DNA of 34,622 bases from Octopus bimaculoides (GCF_001194135.2 NC_068981.1:185452382-185487003), one strand, 5' to 3'; shown: positions 13 through 33,699, numbered from the stretch's first letter. Program-made: numbers and translations. Notes: generated by a model not told the origin, from the sequence alone.

Positions 13-401
13 TACTCTTTTATTCTTTTACTTGTTTCAGTCATTTGACTGCGGACATGCTGGAGCACCGCCTTTAGTCAAGCAAATCGACCCCAGAAAT
101 TATTCTTTGTAAGCCTAGTACTTATTTTATCAGTCAGTTGTGTCGAACCGCTAATTTACGGGGACGTAAACACACTAGCATCAATTGTCAAGCGATGTTG
201 GACACATACACATACATATATATATATACATATACATATATACGACAGGCTTCTTTCAGTTTCCGTCTACTAAATCCACCCACATGGCTTTAGTCGGCTC
301 GAGGCTATAGTAGAAGACACTTGCCCAAGGTGCCACGCAGTGGGACTGAACCCGGAACGATATAGTTGGTAAGCAAACTACTTACCACACAGTCACTCCT
401 G
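13..401 (-). mobile_element. SINE family A, full length (tRNA-derived head, CORE-like central motif, stem-loop 3' tail)
   Basis: Minus strand: head GGAGTGACTGTGTGGTAAG, B-box-like CCGGGTTCAGTCCC, CORE-like GGCACCTTGGGCAAGTGTCTT, tail GGCGGTGCTCCAGCATGTCCGCAGTCAAATGACTGAAACAAGTAAAAG. Homologous copies at 8303-8706 and 17381-17682. Confidence 0.88.
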
Positions 402-439: not shown

Positions 440-585
440 TTGACAACCAGTGTTTTACAACCGTTTGACAACCGCTGGTGGTGTGTTTATGTCACCGTAA
501 GTTAGCGGTCGGCAAAAGACATTGATAGAATAAGTACAAAGATTTACAAAAAAATATAAATAAAAAAACTGATAATAATAATAAT

Positions 586-650
<65 letters not shown>

Positions 651-738
651 GCATTGCCGTCGATTCGCTCGAATAAATCTCTTCAAGGCCATACCTCCAG
701 TATGGCCGCAGTTTAATGACTTAAAGAAGCAAAAGATA
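440..738 (+). mobile_element. SINE family A, headless 3' half interrupted by (AAT)n
   Basis: TTTGACAACCG..GTGTTTATGTCACCGTAAGTTAGCGG and tail CTCCAGTATGGCCGCAGTTTAATGAC match family A; (AAT)n at 572-650 lies inside. Confidence 0.75.
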
Positions 739-751
739 ACATGTAGAGGAC

Positions 752-850
752 ATAGGCGCAGACCTGGCACTGTAGTTAAGAAGCTTGCTTTGCAACCATG
801 TGGCTTTGGTTTCAGTCCCACGACGCAGTACTTTGAGCAAGTCAAGAACT
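752..850 (+). mobile_element. SINE family A head fragment
   Basis: ATAGGCGCAG..AAGCTTGCTTTGCAACCATGTGG..GGTTTCAGTCCCAC..TTTGAGCAAGT is a diverged match to the family A head. Confidence 0.6.
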
Positions 851-2551: not shown

Positions 2552-2987
2552 GCATGCACACGCACACAACCACGGTCGGAGGGACACACACATTAATATG
2601 ATGAGTAAGAATACATCAAAAAGGTGCATAATATATACAGAGTTTGTATTTTCCAGTTACATACTTATCTATGAAGAGCCATTACGAAGCGCTATTCGGT
2701 CCTTCTCTTTTATCCGTAACATTACAGTATGAGCTTTCAAGCTATACTCCTATCTACAAAAAACGGTTATGAACTCCTGCTTTTCTGATTTCCTTGTGCC
2801 TGCTTAGTTATATTTATACCCACACTTCGCTATAGCTTCGATGCATTTAACAACTACTGAACCAACTTAGATTTTAGTGTAGTTGAACCTACGACTGATC
2901 GGTGAAACTAGTCTAGTCCAGTGAACATTGAGTGGCTCATGGGGCGGTTATCTCCGCTGTTAGTATATGTATATATATATATATATA

Positions 2988-3160
2988 TCAAAATAAGCAA
3001 CAAGGATATTCAAAGTTAATGCAGTACTATCTTTTCATGCGACTCCATTTATTTAAGCAATGTGAACATTACATTAAATATAACACATATTTTCGTTAGA
3101 TACAAGATTACCACCACACTACTCAGTCCCAGATCTGAAGATTTTTGCAGGTGCGAATAC
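2988..3160. mobile_element. Unclassified dispersed repeat (family E) abutting (TA)n; host of the CR1-group insertion, resumes at ~3571-3620; second copy at 6636-6700
   Basis: ATCAAAATAAGCAACAAGGATATTCAAAGTTAATGCAGTAC (from 2987) resembles ATCAAGATAAGCAACACGATATCAAGAAGTGATGCAGTAC (from 6639). Complementary segments 3119-3128/3607-3616 and 3130-3134/3597-3601 bracket the LINE. Confidence 0.5.
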
Positions 3161-3162
3161 AT

Positions 3163-3570
3163 ATTTCTATTTTTATTTATTTTATTTTATCTCGTTTCAG
3201 CTCACGTGCTGTGGCCATGCTGGAGCACCACCATTTGGTGTTGCTACATAATTTTACTTCACGAATGCTTTTTAGGAATTGACATTTGGTGCATGAGAGA
3301 GTTTGATGCAGCTGCCTTCATCTGCCGCGATGTTGGTTCATCTGGGACACGTGACAGGAAGAGATCCAGCTTTATGCGGGTCTCTCAGGTCCTTCGGGAG
3401 GATATTGGAGAGCTGTGGACCTCTGAAGCCCAGGCTATTGCAGTATCTTGTCCTACATCTTGATGGCAAATTTGTAGTCCTGGGCACTATGCAGTGGCGC
3501 CCAGTTCTAGTATTTGTGTAACTCTCGATGCCAAAGTTTGGGACAAGTCGTTCCAGGATCTTCCACATGG
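3163..3570 (-). mobile_element. 5'-truncated CR1-group LINE: ORF2 C-terminus (frameshifted), 3' UTR and A-rich tail
   Basis: MWKILERLVPNFGI..NSLGFRGPQLSNILPKDLRD, then after an internal deletion/frameshift KLDLFLSRVPDEPTSRQMKAAASNSLMHQMSIPKKHS* (stop 3259-3261). The N.LP..L...K LD..L pattern resembles CR1/L2-group ORF2 ends. (TAAAA)n tail at 3163-3190. Confidence 0.75.
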
Positions 3571-4064: not shown

Positions 4065-4150
4065 NNNNNNNNNNNNNNNNNNNNNNNNNNNNNNNNNNNN
4101 NNNNNNNNNNNNNNNNNNNNNNNNNNNNNNNNNNNNNNNNNNNNNNNNNN

Positions 4151-6075: not shown

Positions 6076-7789
6076 ATATATATATATATATATATCTATA
6101 TCCTGGAAGACATCGCGGGAAGTTTGTAGCTCATTTCCCCTTCCTATACATAAGTCATTTTAATAAGTTATACTTCTCTCACACCCTCATGTCTGCTTCT
6201 ATTCTTTTTCTGCCCTTTTTAATAATGACAAATACACTGTACCTATTGTTAACTGTTTATTATATGTATTAGCTCCCCTAAACACTTTGGCCCTCTGCAG
6301 AAGCCTAGAGGCACACTCAGCATCCAAACTTTATCTGCCCATCCCTACAGAACACTGAAGAGACGGAGATAGCATGGAGGATTCGTTGCCTCTTGGCAGA
6401 AACGGCCCTAAGGGACTGATCTTTTGCTCTTTTCTGTAATATTGATACATGTGTGTATAACACATAGTTACTACATGTGTATGTTTTCTTTTAATACTTT
6501 CTAATGCTTTGGGATACATAGACACACTGGAATGTCTACCGGATGATATATATATATGTTTAAACATATTATTTTCACCAAATTTTTTCACCAAGTCAGT
6601 CCGGTGTCATCTGCACAGCTTGATGTAAGGTGAATAAAATCAAGATAAGCAACACGATATCAAGAAGTGATGCAGTACGACCGTTTCAAGTGGCAAAAGA
6701 ATATAGTATCTGTTAACATAGGTCAATTTCATTATTATTATTATTATTGCTGTTGTAATAAAGTATTTTCAACGGATCAGTTTTGAGCTCTATTTAAAAT
6801 TGATATANNNNNNNNNNNNNNNNNNNNNNNNNNNNNNNNNNNNNNNNNNNNNNNNNNNNNNNNNNNNNNNNNNNNNNNNNNNNNNNNNNNNNNNNNNNNN
6901 NNNNNNNNNNNNNNNNNNNNNNNNNNNNNNNNNNNNNNNNNNNNNNNNNNNNNNNNNNNNNNNNNNNNNNNNNNNNNNNNNNNNNNNNNNNNNNNNNNNN
7001 NNNNNNNNNNNNNNNNNNNNNNNNNNNNNNNNNNNNNNNNNNNNNNNNNNNNNNNNNNNNNNNNNNNNNNNNNNNNNNNNNNNNNNNNNNNNNNNNNNNN
7101 NNNNNNNNNNNNNNNNNNNNNNNNNNNNNNNNNNNNNNNNNNNNNNNNNNNNNNNNNNNNNNNNNNNNNNNNNNNNNNNNNNNNNNNNNNNNNNNNNNNN
7201 NNNNNNNNNNNNNNNNNNNNNNNNNNNNNNNNNNNNNNNNNNNNNNNNNNNNNNNNNNNNNNNNNNNNNNNNNNNNNNNNNNNNNNNNNNNNNNNNNNNN
7301 NNNNNNNNNNNNNNNNNNNNNNNNNNNNNNNNNNNNNNNNNNNNNNNNNNNNNNNNNNNNNNNNNNNNNNNNNNNNNNNNNNTATATATATATATATATC
7401 GGCTTTTTCCCTGTTAAGTAAAGTTCCTGTAGTTTGTATCAGACACAAGAAACGCTATCCTATACAATATACTGTTCACAACACTCTTTTTATAATTTCA
7501 ACAACTTTCACTCGTTAATGCCTACGAGCACCATTGTCGCATTGACAATCTATTACTGACCTTCACTCATATCTCGGACATCACTAATCTCTCGTTGTCG
7601 AGGAATTTTGCGGAAAGAGTCCTGTTGCTCCCCGTATAAGCAAACTGTTTCATAGTGCTTGGCATGTGACTTTCTCTTTTACCAACTCATCCATCATGAT
7701 TCGGAGGCCTTTTGTCAGTTCACACTACACTGCGTTTTATAATGACAATGCTTTGGATAGAATTACATACTTGCATTAACACTCCGCTC

Positions 7790-8302: not shown

Positions 8303-8706
8303 CTCTTTACTCCTTTACATGTTTCCGTCAGTTGACTTCGGCCATTCTGGAGCACCGCCTTTAGTTGAGCAAATCGACCTCAGGACTTATTCTTTGGAAG
8401 CCTAGTACTTATTCTATCAGCCACTTTTGCCGAACCGCTAAGTTACGGGGACGTAAACACACCAGCATCGGTTGTCAAGCGATGTTGGGGGGAAAAACAC
8501 AAACACACAAACATATGCACACACATACATATAAATATATACATATATACGACGGGCTTCTTTCAGTTTCCGTCTACCAAATCCACTCACAAGGCTTTGG
8601 TCGGCCCGAGGCTATCGTAGAAGACACTTGCCCAAGGTGCCACGCAGTGGGAATGAACCCGGAACCATGTCGCTGGTAAGCAAGCTATTTGCCACACAGC
8701 CACTCC
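8303..8706 (-). mobile_element. SINE family A, full length
   Basis: Colinear with 13-401 from head (GGAGTGGCTGTGTGGC) through GGCACCTTGGGCAAGTGTCTT to tail GGCGGTGCTCCAGAATGGCC. Confidence 0.9.
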
Positions 8707-8856: not shown

Positions 8857-9045
8857 TATTCTTTTATTCTTTTATTCGTTTCAGTCATTTAAATGCGGCC
8901 ATGCTGGGGCATCGCCTTTATCGAACAAATCGATCCCACTAATTATTACTTAAGGCTACAAATTACTCTATCAGTATCTTTTACCAAACTACCAAGTCAC
9001 GGGGACGTAAACAAGTCAACAGTGGTTGCCATGAAAGACGAACAC
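8857..9045 (-). mobile_element. SINE family A 3' half, truncated at (CA)n
   Basis: Plus strand GTTTCAGTCATTTAAATGCGGCCATGCTGGGGCATCGCC..CACGGGGACGTAAAC. Confidence 0.8.
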
Positions 9046-12010: not shown

Positions 12011-12499
12011 ATATATATATATATATATATATNNNNNNNNNNNNNNNNNNNNNNNNNNNNNNNNNNNNNNNNNNNNNNNNNNNNNNNNNNNNNNNNNNNN
12101 NNNNNNNNNNNNNNNNNNNNNNNNNNNNNNNNNNNNNNNNNNNNNNNNNNNNNNNNNNNNNNNNNNNNNNNNNNNNNNNNNNNNNNNNNNNNNNNNNNNN
12201 NNNNNNNNNNNNNNNNNNNNNNNNNNNNNNNNNNNNNNNNNNNNNNNNNNNNNNNNNNNNNNNNNNNNNNNNNNNNNNNNNNNNNNNNNNNNNNNNNNNN
12301 NNNNNNNNNNNNNNNNNNNNNNNNNNNNNNNNNNNNNNNNNNNNNNNNNNNNNNNNNNNNNNNNNNNNNNNNNNNNNNNNNNNNNNNNNNNNNNNNNNNN
12401 NNNNNNNNNNNNNNNNNNNNNNNNNNNNNNNNNNNNNNNNNNNNNNNNNNNNNNNNNNNNNNNNNNNNNNNNNNNNNNNNNTATATATATATATATATA

Positions 12500-13874: not shown

Positions 13875-15353
13875 TGTACATTTAAACACATAAGAGGTAT
13901 CCATCATAGAATTCCCTCACACTAGAAAGAACATCTAAGTTCAAAACCACTNNNNNNNNNNNNNNNNNNNNNNNNNNNNNNNNNNNNNNNNNNNNNNNNN
14001 NNNNNNNNNNNNNNNNNNNNNNNNNNNNNNNNNNNNNNNNNNNNNNNNNNNNNNNNNNNNNNNNNNNNNNNNNNNNNNNNNNNNNNNNNNNNNNNNNNNN
14101 NNNNNNNNNNNNNNNNNNNNNNNNNNNNNNNNNNNNNNNNNNNNNNNNNNNNNNNNNNNNNNNNNNNNNNNNNNNNNNNNNNNNNNNNNNNNNNNNNNNN
14201 NNNNNNNNNNNNNNNNNNNNNNNNNNNNNNNNNNNNNNNNNNNNNNNNNNNNNNNNNNNNNNNNNNNNNNNNNNNNNNNNNNNNNNNNNNNNNNNNNNNN
14301 NNNNNNNNNNNNNNNNNNNNNNNNNNNNNNNNNNNNNNNNNNNNNNNNNNNNNNNNNNNNNNNNNNNNNNNNNNNNNNNNNNNNNNNNNNNNNNNNNNNN
14401 NNNNNNNNNNNNNNNNNNNNNNNNNNNNNNNNNNNNNTATATATATATATGTATATACATATACATACATATGTATACGCATAGATAATTATAAGTGTGA
14501 GTGTGCGTGTTTGTGTGAGTGTTTTTGTGTGTGTATACGAAAAATCTTGAAATGCATTAAACTTATATTCATCCAATCAATATCAATATTATAGAGCATT
14601 ATCTATGCAACAACTGTCACATCAAACATTAATCATAATAATATACATAGCATTGGATTAACAACAAATCAATTTCTAATAGATTCTATCAACATAAGTA
14701 TAATACCAAAATATTTTGATACTGGCCTAGCGATACATAAGTGATGTTTGAACACTTTTTGGCATTACTATGTCAGCTCTTTCAGACGAAAATACTACAT
14801 TATTACACAATCTAGCCCATTCAGTTGATATTATGCTATTGATAAACTCGTAAATCTTGAATATAGTACTAAAATATTAAGTATGTTTCACCAACTGATA
14901 TCTTCGCGCTCACATATGCGGAAATAACTTGCGTTTCTCACCAATTGTATGTTGAAATTTCGATGGAAGGAGACATCTTTGTTTCTTTTCAAAACTATTT
15001 AACTCCTTAGTGTAACACTTTTGTGACGTTCTCTTAACAATAATTCTTCTAAAGCCGTCAGAATAATGGATCTTTGTATAGGGACTGGATTTTCTCCCTA
15101 TGTATATCTCTTTTCATGAAATAACACCACAAGGTTTTATGAATTCGATTATATGTTAGCACTAGTTATTTTGCTTCACACACACACAACTTGAAACATG
15201 CACACACGTACATGCTGCATATATTCATATAATTCCAATGGACATCGACTATCTTTATCACCCATTGATAACGCCCTTATACTCAAACGTCCCTGTGTGT
15301 GCGTGCGTGCGTGTGCTGCAATATAAACTATCCTGATTTTATCTCTATGTTCG

Positions 15354-15551: not shown

Positions 15552-16789
15552 TTGTAATCGTTCATGGCAATGTGACGGTCATTATCAATAAAACAGGCAT
15601 GGCTGTGCGGTTCGGAATTTAAGCTTACAAACAAGAGGGCCCAGTATCAAAACCGACGCGCTATTGTTTACAAAATGTATAAAATATATTATGATAAACA
15701 CCTGATGCAGTTAACATCATTTTGAAGTATTATTCATGAGTGCTCCTACATTGTTCTGTATATCGTAGCAAAGTACAATACTAAGTGCAATACGAAGCCA
15801 TACAACTCTACGCGAGTATAATAGATGATGCTACTCTACATGGAACTCCAAACTCAACAGTAGCAGTCGTGTATCTAACTCTATACACAAGATATATAAA
15901 AATATATTAGTAAAGTAAAATTTACTAGTGTTTGTTGCCACATCCCTAAACAGACATTTTAGTTGGCGACTCCTCTCTTTGAAATTGTAATCCTAATTTA
16001 CTTTGTTGTATTTTTACGCGTTGGATATTAAGCTTGATTGCACGGTTAGTCTGTTTGCTTTCGTGATTCATACAACTGTTTGCTTCGAGTACTTTCACTA
16101 GAACAACACAATTGCTGAAAGATGAAAGTAGTCTCTTCCTTATTGAGATTTGAACTCGAGACAAAGGGAGTTAGAAACTATTGTCTCCGACACATTTTAT
16201 CTGATACTTAATACCTTTCACTTCTTGTATATTATAGACATTTTATTTTATAACAATTTCTGTCCTACTGATAAACATGTTGAAAAAAATATGGTTTAGA
16301 TAGACAACAATTAATGATGGCGATAAAGATAAATGAACTTGCTGTGATAATTATCCTTCTGAAAATCTACCATATGTATCTCTGATTATTATTATTATTA
16401 TTTTTTGTTTTGGTTATATGTGGTAGCGATATTTGTAATTATTAAAAATGTTCTTTCAATTAAGTGAATAGTTATAATTAGCTAATATTTACGTGACCAT
16501 AATTTATAACTAAAATTCCTTATGGCTCTAGTTGTTTAAGTACCTGGCAATTAATTAAAAGGTCAAATATTAATATCGTGTAAATGGTAATAAAACGCTT
16601 AAAATGTAATTAACAGAACATGTAAAGAAGGGCCATGGGGAGATAAGCTATCATTCTACAGTAGATTACAGTGCTAATACAAATCTAATATGTTAAATCA
16701 ATGCCTAATACGGGTTTTGTATAATCTTGAATCTTGAATATAGTGTCGAATTACTTACTGTCTAAGGCTAGGGTTTCCCACCCTCAGAT

Positions 16790-17380: not shown

Positions 17381-17682
17381 AGGAGCAGGCATGGCTGTGT
17401 GGTAAGATGTTTGCCTCCCAGCCACACGGTTTCGGGTTCAAGTATCTTCTAGTATAGCCTCAGACACACTAATACCTCGTGAATAGATCTGTTCGACGGA
17501 AACCAAAAGAAGCCGGTCGTATAGGCATGCTTGGTGTTGCTTTGCTTACGTTTCCGTTACCTAGCTGTTCAGCAAAAGAGATCGATAAATAAGCATCGGG
17601 GCGATTTATTCGGCTAAAAGACTTCAACGCTGTACCGTAGCTTGGCCGCAGTTCAGTGAATGAAACTAGTAAAAGATAAAAG
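17381..17682 (+). mobile_element. SINE family A, diverged, with internal deletions
   Basis: Head GCAGGCATGGCTGTGTGGTAAG..GGGTTCA joined directly to AGTATCTTCTAG (CORE-like segment lost); tail TTGGCCGCAGTTCAGTGAATGAAACTAGTAAAAG. Confidence 0.75.
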
Positions 17683-17819
17683 CTGTTATTTATTCCATCA
17701 CCATTTCTTACAGATTAGAACTACAATCGAAAGATTTCCATCCTAGACCATGCTGTTTTAATTTCAGTCGTGCATTCATTGCAAAATCATTTAGCGCATC
17801 TTCGTTTAAATAGATGTTA

Positions 17820-20434: not shown

Positions 20435-20641
20435 AAGGCAGGGAGCTAGCTGAGTCGTTGGCAGCCGGGCGAAATGCTTAGCAGCATTTCGTCCGGTATT
20501 TACGTTCTGAGTTTAAAACCAGCCGAGGTCGAGTTTGCCTTTCACCCTTTCGGGAAAAAATAAGTACCAGTTGAGCACTAGGATCGATGTAATAGACCAA
20601 CCCCCTCTCGAAATTGTGGCCTCGTGCCAAAATTTGAAACC
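20435..20641 (+). mobile_element. SINE family B, full length
   Basis: AAGGCAGGGAGCTAGC..CCGGGCGAAATGCTTAGC..TCTGAGTTTAAAACC..GTGGCCTCGTGCCAAAATTTGAAACC. Confidence 0.85.
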
Positions 20642-20662
20642 AGTATTGGAAAGCTAAGAAAA

Positions 20663-21090
20663 TGTGGTGTAGCAGCAGAATCGGTAGCACGCCGGACAAA
20701 ATGATTAGCGGTAATCCGTCCGGTCTTTACGTTATCAGTTGAAATTCTTCCGAAGTCGACTTTACCCTTCATCCTTTCAGTGTGTATAAAGTACGCACAA
20801 GTGAATCACTTGGGGTTCAATTTAATTGACTATCCCTCTGTCCACAAATTTATAGTAGAAAGGCATTCAGAAAGTTAAGTAGTTATTGAATTGATAGGTT
20901 CAGTGCAACAACTTTAGATACAGTCTTGCAATATCTTGTTTCAAGTCTTTACTTTCTGAGTTCAAATCCACCTGAGGTCAATTTTGCATTTCTTTATCCC
21001 AGGACAAATAAATAAAATACCAGACAAGAACTGGGATTGATATAATCAACAAACTCTCTCCTCCAAATTTCAGTTCATTTCCTGAGTAAG
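20663..21090 (+). mobile_element. Two further diverged SINE B copies (20663-20860, ~20880-21090)
   Basis: GCAGAATCGGTAGCACGCCGGACAAAATGATTAGCGG.. and TTCTGAGTTCAAATCCACCTGAGGTCAATTTTGC.. Confidence 0.65.
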
Positions 21091-26130: not shown

Positions 26131-26780
26131 AGGCGGCGAGCTGGCAGAAACGTTAGCACGCCGGGCGAAATGCTTAACGGTATTTCGTCTGCCGCTACGT
26201 TCTGAGTTCAAGTTCCGCCGAGGTCGACTTTGCTCTTCGTCTTTCGGGGTCGATTAAATAAGTACCAGTTACGCACTGGGTACGATATAATCGACTTAAT
26301 CCGCTTGTCTGTCCTTGTTTGTCCCCTGTACGTTTATCCACTTGGGGTCAATAAAGAATTAAGAATCTTTAGCACGCCGGGCGAAATGCTTAGCGGTATT
26401 TCATCTGCCGCTACGTTCTGAGTTCAAATTCCGCCGAGGTTGACTTTGCCTTTCATCCTATCGGGGTCGATTAAATAAGTACCAGTTACGCATTGGGGTC
26501 GATATAATCGACTTAATCGGTTTGTCTGTCCTTGTTTGTCCCCTCTGTGTGTAGCTTCTTGTGGGCAGTTAAGAAATAAGAAACGTTAGTACGCCGGGTG
26601 AAATGTTTCGCGGTATTTCGTCTGCTGCTACGTTCTGAGTTCAAATTGCGCCGATGTCGATTTTGCCTTTCATCCTCTCATGGTCGATAAATTAATTACC
26701 AGTCGCGTACTGTGGCCAATCTAATTGACTGCCTCCCCTCTCCCAAAATTTCGAGCCTTTTGACTAGAGCAGAAAAGAAT
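26131..26780 (+). mobile_element. Head-to-tail trimer of SINE family B (period 216-217 bp)
   Basis: TTAG(C/T)ACGCCGGG at 26153, 26369 and 26586; A-box-like TGGCAGAAACGTTAG complete only in unit 1; B-box-like GAGTTCAA(G/A)TT in all units. Confidence 0.92.
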
Positions 26781-26794
26781 TTTATATACTGTAT

Positions 26795-26985
26795 AAGGAG
26801 GGGGCTTGGTAGACTCGTTAGTACGCCAGTATTCCGTACGTCTTCACGGTCTGAGTTCAAATTCCGCCAAGGTCGACTTTGGGTTTCATCGTTTTCGGCT
26901 CGGTAAAACAAGTACGAGTTGAGTACTTGGGGGGGGGGGTTATGTAATCGACTGGCCCCTTCTCCCCAAAATTGCTGCTGTCCAA
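26795..26985 (+). mobile_element. SINE family B, separate fourth copy with its own head and an internal deletion
   Basis: AAGGAGGGGGCTTGGTAGACTCGTTAGTACGCC..TCTGAGTTCAAATTCCGCC..CCCCAAAATTGCTG. Confidence 0.8.
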
Positions 26986-27509
26986 AGGAATGTGTATAAA
27001 AGACAAAACGACAGCCAGTCAACTGCTATGAAGCAGGAAAGTCTACTAGCCCCTACCTCTCTATATATTTAATACTCAATATTTCATATATTCAATAAGA
27101 CATTCAATACTTCATTTCATTTTACTATTTAGATTATATATTCCATATTCTATATCCCACATTAATTTTATAAGAATATAAATAAAACATAAAAAACAGA
27201 CAAATTTGGAATTATTTTAAATAATATATTCCTCTATACACTATCATACAAACCCCATTTTCTATTTTTTATTTCTATTTATATATTTATATATATGTAN
27301 NNNNNNNNNNNNNNNNNNNNNNNNNNNNNNNNNNNNNNNNNNNNNNNNNNNNNNNNNNNNNNNNNNNNNNNNNNNNNNNNNNNNNNNNNNNNNNNNNNNN
27401 NNNNNNNNNNNNNNNNNNNNNNNNNNNNNNNNNNNNNNNNNNNNNNNNNNNNNNNNNNNNNNNNNNNNNNNNNNNNNNNNNNNNNNNNNNNNNNNNNNNN
27501 NNNNNNNNN

Positions 27510-27659: not shown

Positions 27660-27838
27660 CGAATGTTTGACAACCGATGTTGCTGCGTTTACGTCCTCGT
27701 AGGAGCCGTTTGGCAAAACACACCGATATAATACGTGCTACGCTTACAAAGAATAAATCCTGGAATCGATTTCTTCGACTAAATGCGATGCTCCATCATG
27801 TCCGTAATGACATGACCGAAACAAGGAAAACAACATAA
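27660..27838 (+). mobile_element. SINE family A 3' half
   Basis: TTTGACAACCGATGTTGCTGCGTTTACGTCC..GCTTACAAAGAATAAATCCTGG..GCGATGCTCCATCATGTCCG. Confidence 0.75.
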
Positions 27839-27878
27839 AACTATGCCATTTTTATTCCGAGCTAGTATATATATGCAA

Positions 27879-28194: not shown

Positions 28195-28505
28195 ATAATC
28201 GCTGTTTTTAAATGTCTAAATACCTTTAAATTTTTAGACATTTTCCTACCAAGAGCACTTATTAGAAATTCAGTATATTGTATTCTCATTGAATATATTT
28301 GATTAACGATATATATACATATATACATCCACACACACAAACACAAACACACAAACACACACACACACACAGACACAGACACACACACGCATANNNNNNN
28401 NNNNNNNNNNNNNNNNNNNNNNNNNNNNNNNNNNNNNNNNNNNNNNNNNNNNNNNNNNNNNNNNNNNNNNNNNNNNNNNNNNNNNNNNNNNNNNNNNNNN
28501 NNNNN

Positions 28506-30837: not shown

Positions 30838-32734
30838 ACTTGAAGGCCATCGTCATAGCGGCTGGTTTCCGTCCCGTCTTCCGTGGCTGGATAGCTGCCT
30901 TGTACAGAGGCATCCGTTCGGTAATTCGCCTGAATGGGCATCTATCGAGACCTTTCGACATTGCACGTTCGGTCCGCTCTCGTCGCTTCTGTACGTATTG
31001 ACTCTCGAGCTAGTACTGCGGAAGCTGGCGTCACTGAGGGGCATCCGGCGAGAATTGGGATGCGGGACGAGCGTGTCCGCATACGCGGACGACGTCGCCG
31101 TCATCGTGCCTAGCCAGGAGCATATCGAGCTGGTCGGCGATGCACTGAAAGACTACGAAGCGGTAACAGAAGCGAAAATCAACTGGGAAAAGTCAGTGGG
31201 ATTGCTGCTCGGCACCTGGAGAAGCAAGCCCATGTTGTTTACCTGCGCCTCTGTCGTGGGACGCTGGACCGACGGCTCGGTCGAGTTGCTCGGGGTCTGG
31301 TTGGTCCGGACCTCCAAAAGGAGAACTGGAACGAGGTAACGAGTAAGGTGGCCACTCTCGCCCGGCAATAGTTCGAGAGGAAGCTGTCCTTAAAAGGTCG
31401 GGCTGAGGTGGTGCACATGTCCATCGCGTCCGTCATCTACTACCGCCTGACCGTCGTGCCTTGTCCCAGCTCTAACATCACCAAATTGGAACGCATTCTC
31501 TTCTGCTTCTTGTGGAAATGAAGCGTTCCGACGGTCAGGTGATCCATTTGCTGCCAACATCCGTTAAAAGGCGGGCTGGGCATGCTGTGGTTGATGATGC
31601 GCAGACATGATGCGCAGACACGCGCTGAGACTGCCACATCTCCGGCTCTACGTAGGCAACAGTGAACAGTGAACAGGTGTGCTCGCCGTTTGTGACCGAA
31701 CTGCAGTCATGGATCAAAAAGAGGCCGACGAAGGGCGTTTGGCACCGCGAATGTCGAGTTGCTCTCAAGCAACTATGCCGTCCCGGGTCGACCTCGAGCG
31801 ACTGCAACACAACCAAAGCATTCTATGGAGGATTAGTGTGGAGGGGAGGTACGACGACGATCTCGGGGCGAACCTGGGCGTTGACGAGGAATACTTGACC
31901 CACCTGTTCAAGAAGGCCTAGCAGTGCTAACGAAAAGCTCCACCCGTTCGGGATAAGCTCTACAGGCATGGGTCAAGAAACACGGGGCCCAACTTGCTCG
32001 AGATGCGGTCAGAACAACGAAACTGTTTTGCATGCACTCGTACAGTGTCCAACCATTTCCGACTTGTGGGCCTATGTTGAACGACTGCTATCACGCCTGG
32101 GACGAGTCAGTTTATCAACCGAGTCTATCGTGAATATTGTCGCGCCTCCTTTCTTGAAACGGGAAGGAAGAGCCATTTTCATCGTACTTGTGGCTATGGC
32201 GAAAGAATGTGTATGGTGGATGCGTCTGAAACGTCTAGAGTAAACACTTTCCTCTCTAATGAATCTCTCATCAACTTCTTCAAGTATCATTTGAAAAGGA
32301 AGGTGAGAGTAGAGAGGGAAGTTTTGTCTAGTGAATGTTTCAATAAAAGATGGGTGAATGTAGCAAGAATGGCATGTGTGAATGACAGAGACACATAGAA
32401 CATTATAATCGTATGAACCAGAAAAAGAAAGGAAAAATGAGTCAGTTACTGTAATGTGCTTTTTGCATGACGTTATTGCCTGAGGTTACCGTGGTCTTTT
32501 CCGTAGGTTTTTCTTTCCAGAGATAAACTTAATCTGTTTTCCCTTTTACATTATGACATTTCTGTGATACACGATCCCTATTAATCGGCTTTCTCCTTTT
32601 CTTTTTCCTTCTTTCCATGATCCCTTTTGATCGAAATTCTACCCCTATTATTTTTCTTCTCTTCCCAAAAAGAAAAGCTCTACTTTGTATTTTGTCCCCT
32701 CTGTGTTCAGCCATGTGTGGCTGACAAAGAAACA
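30838..32734 (+). mobile_element. Tx1/L1-clade non-LTR retrotransposon, ORF2 3' half (inactive) plus 3' UTR
   Basis: LKAIVIAAGF..WIAALY..IRLNGHLSRPFDIARSVR[QGCP lost at 30976/7]LSSLLYVLTLE; YADD at 31082-31093; KINWEKS; LLGVW; HPLKGGLG; C-x2-C-x8-H-x4-C at 31995-32048; ORF ends 32398; several stops and frameshifts. Confidence 0.92.
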
Positions 32735-32798: not shown

Positions 32799-33699
32799 CA
32801 TCTATCTATCTATCTATCTACACACATATACATATTTACAGGCATATGTATGCGTATATGTATGTTTATACGTGCGTTTATATATGTACACATACATATG
32901 TGTGTGTGTGTGCGTGCGTATGATTGTATGTGTATATGTCTTTGTACGTATGTGTGTGTAGGTATATTTGTGTTTGCACGAGTGCCAGTATGTATATGTG
33001 CGTCCGTGTGTGTAAGTTGAAAATTTGATTTCAAGACGTGTTTCATTATTATAAAAGTACAATAACAAAAAAGAATCTCACTTTATTTTTTTATTTTTCG
33101 CTGAAGTCGTCGCAATTACCGCTTCACACTCGTCAACTTTGTTATTAGCATGAACATCATCCATTAATCCAACTCTACTCTCAACCTTCTATCCTCCTCC
33201 TCCTCCTCCTCCTCCNNNNNNNNNNNNNNNNNNNNNNNNNNNNNNNNNNNNNNNNNNNNNNNNNNNNNNNNNNNNNNNNNNNNNNNNNNNNNNNNNNNNN
33301 NNNNNNNNNNNNNNNNNNNNNNNNNNNNNNNNNNNNNNNNNNNNNNNNNNNNNNNNNNNNNNNNNNNNNNNNNNNNNNNNNNNNNNNNNNNNNNNNNNNN
33401 NNNNNNNNNNNNNNNNNNNNNNNNNNNNNNNNNNNNNNNNNNNNNNNNNNNNNNNNNNNNNNNNNNNNNNNNNNNNNNNNNNNNNNNNNNNNNNNNNNNN
33501 NNNNNNNNNNNNNNNNNNNNNNNNNNNNNNNNNNNNNNNNNNNNNNNNNNNNNNNNNNNNNNNNNNNNNNNNNNNNNNNNNNNNNNNNNNNNNNNNNNNN
33601 NNNNNNNNNNNNNNNNNNNNNNNNNNNNNNNNNNNNNNNNNNNNNNNNNNNNNNNNNNNNNNNNNNNNNNNNNNNNNNNNNNNNNNNNNNNNNNNNNNN

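Follow-up and report, generated by a model that had tools for sequence, protein, structure and literature searches.

The window, by which we mean the whole stretch of 34,622 nucleotides of Octopus bimaculoides DNA analysed here, is AT-rich, filled with microsatellites and interrupted by N gaps. Its minus strand carries the 3' end of a LINE (Table 1): a remnant of ORF2, reading ...WKILERLVPNFGIESYTNTRTGRHCIVP...YCNSLGFRGPQLSNILPKDLRD / KLDLFLSRVPDEPTSRQMKAAASNSLMHQMSIPKKHS*, is followed by a stop codon, a short spacer, a tail and an A-rich repeat. The remnant is 5'-truncated and contains one frameshift, or a deletion of about 24 nt, near position 3372; weaker DNA similarity may extend it to about 3620. 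It corresponds to residues 866-973 of P0121, an endonuclease and reverse transcriptase (RT) protein of 984 amino acids that is the closest to the window element of six full-length relatives. The last ~110 codons of related ORF2 proteins fall on 3574-3268 in tblastn searches, and DNA homology with seven other LINE copies spans 3569-3269. This copy is a dead fragment. Downstream of the spacer, from 3232 to about 3163, the sequence is GGTGGTGCTCCAGCATGGCC A CAGCACGTGAGCTG AAAC GAGATAAAATAAAATAAATAAAAATAG, and homology with other LINE tails extends to about 3155-3161. With ORF2 closed by the TGA codon, the interval 3163-3260 covers the 3' UTR of this 5'-truncated copy in full.

Table 1. Position of the LINE fragment, its tail and the SINE A copies in the window, and of the tails of other LINE copies
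Feature	Sequence	Position	Strand	Basis or remarks
LINE ORF2 remnant, last ~110 codons	window	3574-3262	minus	tblastn with P0001, P0002, P0004, P0005, P0006 (57-71% identity)
ORF2 stop codon TGA	window	3261-3259	minus	direct sequence reading; in frame with ...SNSLMHQMSIPKKHS
3' UTR spacer, 26 nt, non-conserved	window	3258-3233	minus	aligns with no other LINE copy
LINE tail, 56 nt	window	3232-3177	minus	matches 3' end of SINE A
Tail hairpin HP1 (predicted), GGU-G-GUGC-UCCA-GCAU-G-GCC	window	3232-3213	minus	RNAfold, RNAalifold, pair counts
Tail hairpin HP2 (predicted), CAGC-ACGUGA-GCUG	window	3211-3198	minus	RNAfold, RNAalifold, pair counts
AAAC, then A-rich short-unit repeat GAGATAAAATAAAATAAATAAAAATAG; 3' end of element	window	3197-3163	minus	direct sequence reading
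Full-length SINE A	window	17-400	minus	tail 72-17; covariance model 83 bits
Second full-length SINE A	window	8304-8706	minus	tail 8359-8304; BLAST, covariance model
5'-truncated SINE A	window	8861-9013	minus	tail 8916-8861 kept, with three RRTAAAAG units
5'-truncated SINE A	window	27667-27839	plus	tail 27784-27839 kept
SINE A-related copy	window	462-743	plus	second body, (AAT)n expansion, variant tail 687-743, extra ATCTCTTCA before HP1
Diverged, internally deleted SINE A	window	17386-17683	plus	weak tail match 17628-17683 (26 bits, E = 0.0012)
LINE copy L001	NCBI GCA_024449705.1			stop, 1 nt, then GGCGGTGCCCCAGCATGGCCACAGCCCGTAAACTAGGGCTGAAAC CAGTAAAAGAATAAAAGAATA
LINE copy L002	ENA			stop, 54 nt, then GGTGGTGCTCCAGCATGACCACAGCCATATGGCTGAAAC...
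LINE copy L004	Octopus vulgaris OX597818.1	tail start 10477
LINE copy L005	Octopus vulgaris OX597824.1	~10334		degenerate tail
LINE copies L006, L007	ENA			tail found after ORF2
LINE copy L248	Logan			tail found after ORF2

The SINE family that concerns us, here called SINE A, was found by BLAST at least 12 times in about 75 kb of octopus sequence, made up of the window and two O. vulgaris loci. The element is about 370-400 nt long and consists, from 5' to 3', of a head, a CORE-like segment, an internal (TG/TA)n stretch, a second body, a hairpin GTCGA/TCGAC and the LINE-type tail; the copy at 17-400 ends in GGCGGTGCTCCAGCATGTCCGCAGTCAAATGACTGAAAC AAGTAAAAGAATAAAAG. Copies that are 5'-truncated keep their tail, as expected because target-primed reverse transcription starts at the 3' end. 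The head contains a box A-like motif, TGGCTGTGTGG, identified by inspection, and a box B-like motif, GGTTCAGTCCC; neither ARAGORN nor Rfam, at its gathering and E-value thresholds, calls a tRNA there. The segment starting with CCTTGGGCAAGT aligns locally with the MIR core with a score of 33, against 17.4 +/- 3.0 in shuffled sequences (1 in 1000 reaches it), the MIR reference being approximate and the match serving as a lead only. SINE A is probably of the tRNA-Core, or CORE-SINE, kind known from octopus. Octopus SINEs have been reported to be mainly tRNA-Core and tRNA-Deu elements (PMC8967140), and published lists of CORE-SINEs include octopus OR1 or OR2 (PMC4824008, PMC4758252).

Some copies form a subfamily in which about 9-10 additional nucleotides (AATTCTTCA / ATCTCTTCA) separate the GTCGA/TCGAC hairpin from the first hairpin of the tail, often with GCAG...CUGC instead of GCGG...CCGC at that place. 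Its members are the plus-strand copy at 462-743, whose (AAT)n expansion lies at about 575-650, and three copies of the O. vulgaris locus L005, at about 2944-3000, 15643-15699 and 15980-16035. Directly downstream of the tail at 687-743 lies an isolated fragment resembling a SINE head (770-850, plus strand; SINE A positions 22-87, 73%), the copies being nested or adjacent.

The tails of the LINE and of SINE A are homologous. An earlier note on this DNA had proposed that the LINE 3' UTR and SINE A have a common tail, and the two sequences that it quoted are exact in the window: the LINE tail corresponds to 3232-3194 and the SINE tail to 72-34, both read as reverse complements. Aligned without gaps, they agree at 28 of 39 positions and both contain the exact 14-mer GGTGCTCCAGCATG, which occurs five times in the window with at most two mismatches, against 0.07 expected (none of 100 shuffles reaches five). 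The stems CAGC/GCTG (3211-3198) in the LINE and CAGTC/GACTG in the SINE, followed by (G)AAAC and an A-rich end, are also as the note described them. When the whole SINE is compared by BLAST with the window, the LINE is matched only at SINE positions 331-383 (E = 5e-5); other LINE copies are matched with E = 1e-12 to 3e-14, again only at positions ~330-405, so that the homology is confined to the tail. The consensus tails of LINE and SINE agree at 48 of 56 positions (86%), and the five differences that fall in the structured part are all wobble-compatible, compensatory or unpaired. One covariance model built from the tails detects both kinds: the tails on which it was trained score 53-83 bits, no spurious match appears in 103 kb, and the seven tails that it finds in the window are six of SINEs and one of the LINE (3177-3232). 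A search of metagenome_contigs and genome_contigs with the pattern GGYGGTGCYCCAGCATGRC returned only chance matches in GC-rich prokaryotic DNA, none of them with a downstream hairpin and GAAAC.

The next question is whether the tail belongs to the LINE. Contigs with relatives were found by protein search with the ORF2 remnant of the window, and then with a small alignment of that remnant. The tail follows the ORF2 stop codon in all eight independent LINE 3' ends collected in this way (the window, L001, L002, L004, L005, L006, L007 and L248), which come from at least six sources and are a small sample rather than a genome-wide census. Two contigs were left out of this count: L003, chimeric or 3'-truncated, in which the LINE ORF runs into unrelated GC-rich sequence, and L250, whose gene translation does not match the query and whose locus has no tail. 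The length of the spacer between stop and tail varies from 1 to about 130 nt among the other LINE copies and is not conserved. The window copy aligns with these copies in two DNA blocks, the ORF (3569-3269, 68-72% identity) and the tail (3235-3155, 77-85%), and the spacer between the blocks aligns in none of them; conservation is thus higher in the tail than in the coding sequence. LINE tails have their own C-G pair in the second hairpin, where SINEs have U-A, and the motif GGGGTCGATTTGCTCGACTAAA, found just before the tail in SINEs, is missing from them. The tail belongs to the LINE as an integral component, conserved by selection. The note had also stated that the tail is physically attached to ORF2, with which the tblastn matches and the stop codon agree, and had given as the finding that would speak against its reading a majority of LINE copies without the tail: what was found is the tail in every one of the eight.

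The common tail is predicted to fold into two hairpins, not one. The first, HP1, has the consensus GGY-G-GUGC-NCCA-GCAU-G-RCC: an outer stem of 3 bp, a 1x1 internal loop, an inner stem of 4 bp and an NCCA tetraloop. The second, HP2, has the consensus CAGYC-loop-GRCUG and is followed by AAAC and the A-rich short-unit repeat. The single hairpin described in the earlier note is HP2, which stands; the upstream part, which the note had treated as plain shared sequence, is itself the predicted hairpin HP1 (3232-3213). RNAfold gives the HP1 fold of the window tail an ensemble frequency of 95%, and predicts the same two hairpins in every LINE tail and in the consensus sequences of both SINE subfamilies, with ensemble frequencies mostly of 0.6-0.95 and z-scores of -2.5 to -4 for most tails. 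RNAalifold, applied to seven LINE tails and the two SINE consensus sequences, independently predicts this fold. Another register for HP1, pairing GYGG with CCRC, was dropped, the RNAfold register being the one that pairs in every LINE copy.

Counts of base pairs point the same way. On 18 tails, 91.1% of the cells are paired (94% for HP1), against 20-39% when the partners are slid by one to three columns; the sample is small (8 LINE tails and 10-11 SINE tails), and the neutral decay of SINE copies blurs such counts. The covariation score of the same 18 tails is 0.284, against 0.185 +/- 0.018 in shuffles, none of 500 reaching it, although related sequences can beat shuffles in a count of this kind. 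Six of the 12 pairs are changed on both sides. Pair 3-19 of HP1 is C-G in nine sequences, U-A in three and U-G in three; at the fourth pair of HP2, ten SINE tails have U-A, seven LINE tails have C-G and one tail has U-G, and in none is it unpaired. The control with slid partners and this compensatory pair between LINE and SINE are stronger evidence of covariation than the shuffles. The covariation of the stem, which the note had proposed as a check, is thus found in both stems. The HP2 loop, of 3-8 nt, has no conserved sequence although its stem is kept, and the HP1 loop keeps NCCA.

To what clade does this LINE belong? A profile of its C-terminal module, of about 220 amino acids, retrieves 29,057 proteins at E <= 0.001, and in long proteins (about 960-1085 aa) the module is the extreme C-terminus. 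Full-length relatives measure about 970-1020 aa. P0121, P0125, P0135, P0137, P0139 and P0143 contain the domains Exo_endo_phos and RVT_1 and nothing else, so the window remnant comes from the ORF2 of a non-LTR retrotransposon of the endonuclease type that lacks RNase H; this architecture fits the CR1 group but is not exclusive to it. The nearest annotated relatives of the window element are hypothetical proteins of Octopus vulgaris, and the database names of ten full-length relatives offer none that is informative for the clade. The C-terminal pattern LDYCSQLWSP...YWERL..L.LYSLERRRERY.IIY.WKILEG...F.G..LFN.LP..LR......FK..LD..L resembles the C-terminus of CR1/L2 elements. The 3' end has hairpins and, in place of poly(A), a microsatellite of short units. 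The copies are strongly 5'-truncated. A 3' end with a hairpin and short units is also found in the related L2 clade and does not separate CR1 from L2. The window LINE probably belongs to the CR1/L2 group. The narrower label of CR1 group is plausible, given the C-terminal motif, the design of the 3' end, the strong 5' truncation and the recent activity of CR1 in O. vulgaris, with CR1, CR1-Zenon and L2 inseparable here.

Three more distant elements of the same protein superfamily, L249, L251 and L252, have a similar plan, with hairpins and an A-rich short-unit repeat, and a different tail sequence; the covariance model of the tail detects none of them. It follows that only the octopus-type subgroup of these LINEs has this particular module. 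L249 keeps an HP1-like GUAC-CCCA-GUAC, that is, a covarying HP1 stem with a CCCA loop. The terminal repeats also differ between copies: it is (ATAAA)n in the window LINE and (RRTAAAAG)n in SINE A, of which two or three units end both SINE A and other LINE copies. L001, L004 and L007 have the terminal repeat of SINE A and match the SINE better than the window copy does.

The partly A-rich composition might suggest that the likeness of the tails is due to chance or low complexity. The common part is not of low complexity; with the excess of the 14-mer, BLAST values down to 3e-14 and a covariance model at 53-83 bits without spurious matches in 103 kb, the probability of this reading is negligible. 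Another reading, in which 3163-3232 stems from a separate SINE whose end landed beside a LINE fragment, draws on the density of SINE A, with six tails in 34.6 kb, and on the flanks: no target-site duplication brackets the fragment and its tail as one unit, the best flank match, AAT(A)AAA[C/T]AGAAA, being no better than in shuffles (285 of 500 reach its score). We reject it, since in all eight of the independent LINE 3' ends the tail comes directly after ORF2, the LINE tails have their diagnostic C-G pair in HP2 in place of the U-A of SINEs, and none of them is preceded by GGGGTCGATTTGCTCGACTAAA; an insertion of this kind is extremely improbable.

The explanation that we prefer, and consider quite likely, is that an octopus LINE with endonuclease and RT has a 3' end with a two-hairpin module, and that SINE A carries a copy of it in a partnership of the stringent type. 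The ORF2 protein of the LINE would recognise the hairpin module on its own RNA, to which it presumably binds, and prime reverse transcription on the terminal repeat at the nicked target; the RNA of SINE A, presenting the same module, would be copied in trans by the same machinery. By analogy with known pairs, SINE A may thus be mobilised by this LINE family. The module would have moved from the LINE to the SINE, a direction supported by its presence across divergent LINE subfamilies. Because the window copy is dead and has a different terminal repeat, and because L001, L004 and L007 match the SINE better, what is found here is a candidate driver family and not the driver copy.

It is also conceivable that a sibling subfamily, or a LINE of another clade such as RTE or Dong-R4, mobilises SINE A or did so in the past, and that the lineage seen here is only a relative of the true partner. 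The better match of the SINE to L001, L004 and L007 than to the window repeat would agree with this; taking a relative for the partner is an error of which students of bivalves have been warned (PMC11481361), and octopus has large, active populations of RTE and Dong-R4 (PMC13282606, PMC8967140, PMC9115989). We consider it unlikely on the tails compared, which are those of LINEs of this protein superfamily: the module is common to all sampled subfamilies of the LINE lineage, so a sibling partner would still belong to the same LINE family, and L249, L251 and L252, which are more distant within the superfamily, have different tail sequences. Similarity by itself gives no direction, and the LINE lineage could have received its 3' module from the SINE. 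This reversal is very unlikely, as the module occurs in LINE copies whose proteins are only 54-73% identical to P0121, in several assemblies, the distant L249 keeps the plan with its covarying HP1 stem and CCCA loop, and selection maintains the module in the LINE, where it is more conserved than the ORF DNA.

The preferred account, a stringent-type partnership of the LINE and SINE A, has counterparts in several known systems. In the eel, UnaL2 ends in one stem-loop with a conserved loop, followed by (TGTAA)n, whereas the octopus tail has two predicted hairpins, a conserved NCCA loop in HP1, a variable loop in HP2 and an A-rich unit of about 8 nt. In UnaL2/UnaSINE1 as in the octopus pair, the LINE and its SINE, a tRNA-derived CORE-SINE in the eel and a probable CORE-SINE in octopus, have in common a 3' stem-loop with a short-unit repeat behind it, in keeping with the stringent recognition model. 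The common 3' tail of UnaL2, of the L2 clade, and UnaSINE1 is required for mobilisation (Kajikawa & Okada 2002, summarised in PMC3747384). That partnership was functionally tested; the octopus pair is proposed here from sequence comparison.

Amniote CR1 elements have a repeat unit ATTCTRTG, against RRTAAAAG in octopus, and the turtle CR1 is partnered by the tortoise Pol III SINE. The pattern F..R...L(W/F)N.LP......FK..LD..L at the C-terminus is common to amniote CR1 and the octopus ORF2. Amniote CR1 and the octopus LINE are alike in their heavy 5' truncation, a conserved hairpin in the 3' UTR, two or three repeats of a unit of about 8 nt, an ORF2 with endonuclease and RT, and a 3' UTR proposed as the recognition site of the RT, but the tail sequences have no similarity. 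A hairpin and an octamer microsatellite have been described in the 3' UTR of amniote CR1 (PMC4316615). CR1 and RTE predominate among partner LINEs (PMC3747384), and the CORE, V, Meta and Deu SINEs of bivalves have CR1, CR1-Zenon, L2 or Nimb as partners (PMC4758252, PMC11481361). Bivalve pairs, CORE-type SINEs with CR1 among them, have 35-61 bp in common at 72-95% identity (PMC11481361), figures with which the 56 nt at 86% of the octopus consensus sequences compare well; the studies of bivalves and gastropods report no cephalopod pair and no two-hairpin structure supported by covariation (PMC4758252, PMC11481361). With MIR/L2, MIR being a mammalian CORE-SINE, SINE A would have in common a tRNA-type head, a CORE segment, whose stretch CCTTGGGCAAGT... 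aligns with the approximate MIR reference, and a LINE-derived tail; unlike MIR, it has another tail and partner, an internal microsatellite and a second body.

The stringent LINE-SINE mechanism has been established since 1996-2002, and the octopus tails are a well-supported, ordinary example of a known relationship, a further example that leaves the understanding of such partnerships unchanged. About 12% of the O. vulgaris genome consists of SINEs. Common LINE-SINE tails are a textbook relationship (PMC3747384). SINEs are the largest class of retroelements in octopus genomes, through an expansion specific to octopus (PMC8967140, PMC13282606), and both CR1 LINEs and SINEs are reported to have been recently active in O. 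vulgaris (PMC13282606). The octopus-repeat literature that we examined names no autonomous partner for these SINEs, although Repbase entries or supplements may already note the pair; the list of pairs in PMC3747384 has no mollusc entry, and PMC4758252 and PMC11481361 cover only bivalves and gastropods. The LINE family that bears the tail is a concrete candidate for the driver of octopus SINEs, and its two-hairpin module is a small, structurally defined RNA element open to deletion and compensatory-mutation tests. One may go further and conjecture that the octopus-specific expansion of SINEs is powered by this CR1-like lineage rather than by the RTE elements so far highlighted in the octopus brain. 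The module of about 40 nt, HP1 with its NCCA loop and HP2, would then serve as a small, portable signal for retrotransposition, with stems that co-evolve in LINE and SINE; we see the chances of this wider proposal as evenly balanced.

Several other features were noted along the way. The longer N gaps of the window lie at 1924-2267, 4065-4150, 6808-7382, 12033-12481, 13952-14437, 27300-27509, 28394-28505 and 33216-33699; most of them have (TA)n or (TG)n microsatellites on their flanks, so that the assembly breaks at simple repeats, and the largest 'families' returned by the repeat finder are artefacts of Ns and microsatellites. Contig L003, from a metagenome, is probably an assembly chimera: in its interval 940-1600 the end of ORF2 abuts GC-rich sequence with a long ORF on the minus strand. 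On the plus strand of the window, within the GC-rich interval 31001-32000 (GC 0.57), an ORF at 30998-31339 contains a YADD RT motif, with a match to RVT_1 (E = 2e-5) below the Pfam cut-off; the full-length relatives of the LINE studied here do not match it, which points to a fragment of a different retroelement. Two tandem arrays, at 26146-26930 and 20501-21036, have a period of 216-227 bp (86% matches and 2.6 units according to TRF). Their unit, repeated head to tail, has a Pol III-type head of its own (…TTAGCACGCCGGGCGAAATGCTTAGCGGTATTTCGTCTGCCGCTACGTTCTGAGTTCAAATTCCGCCGAGGTCGAC…) and represents a second SINE-like family; the covariance model finds no LINE tail in either array. Finally, P0012, a 94-aa fragment of an octopus-type LINE ORF2, comes from a contig of 563 bp and is recorded at NCBI as 'hypothetical protein, partial [Escherichia coli]'; it is almost certainly a eukaryotic contamination of a bacterial assembly.
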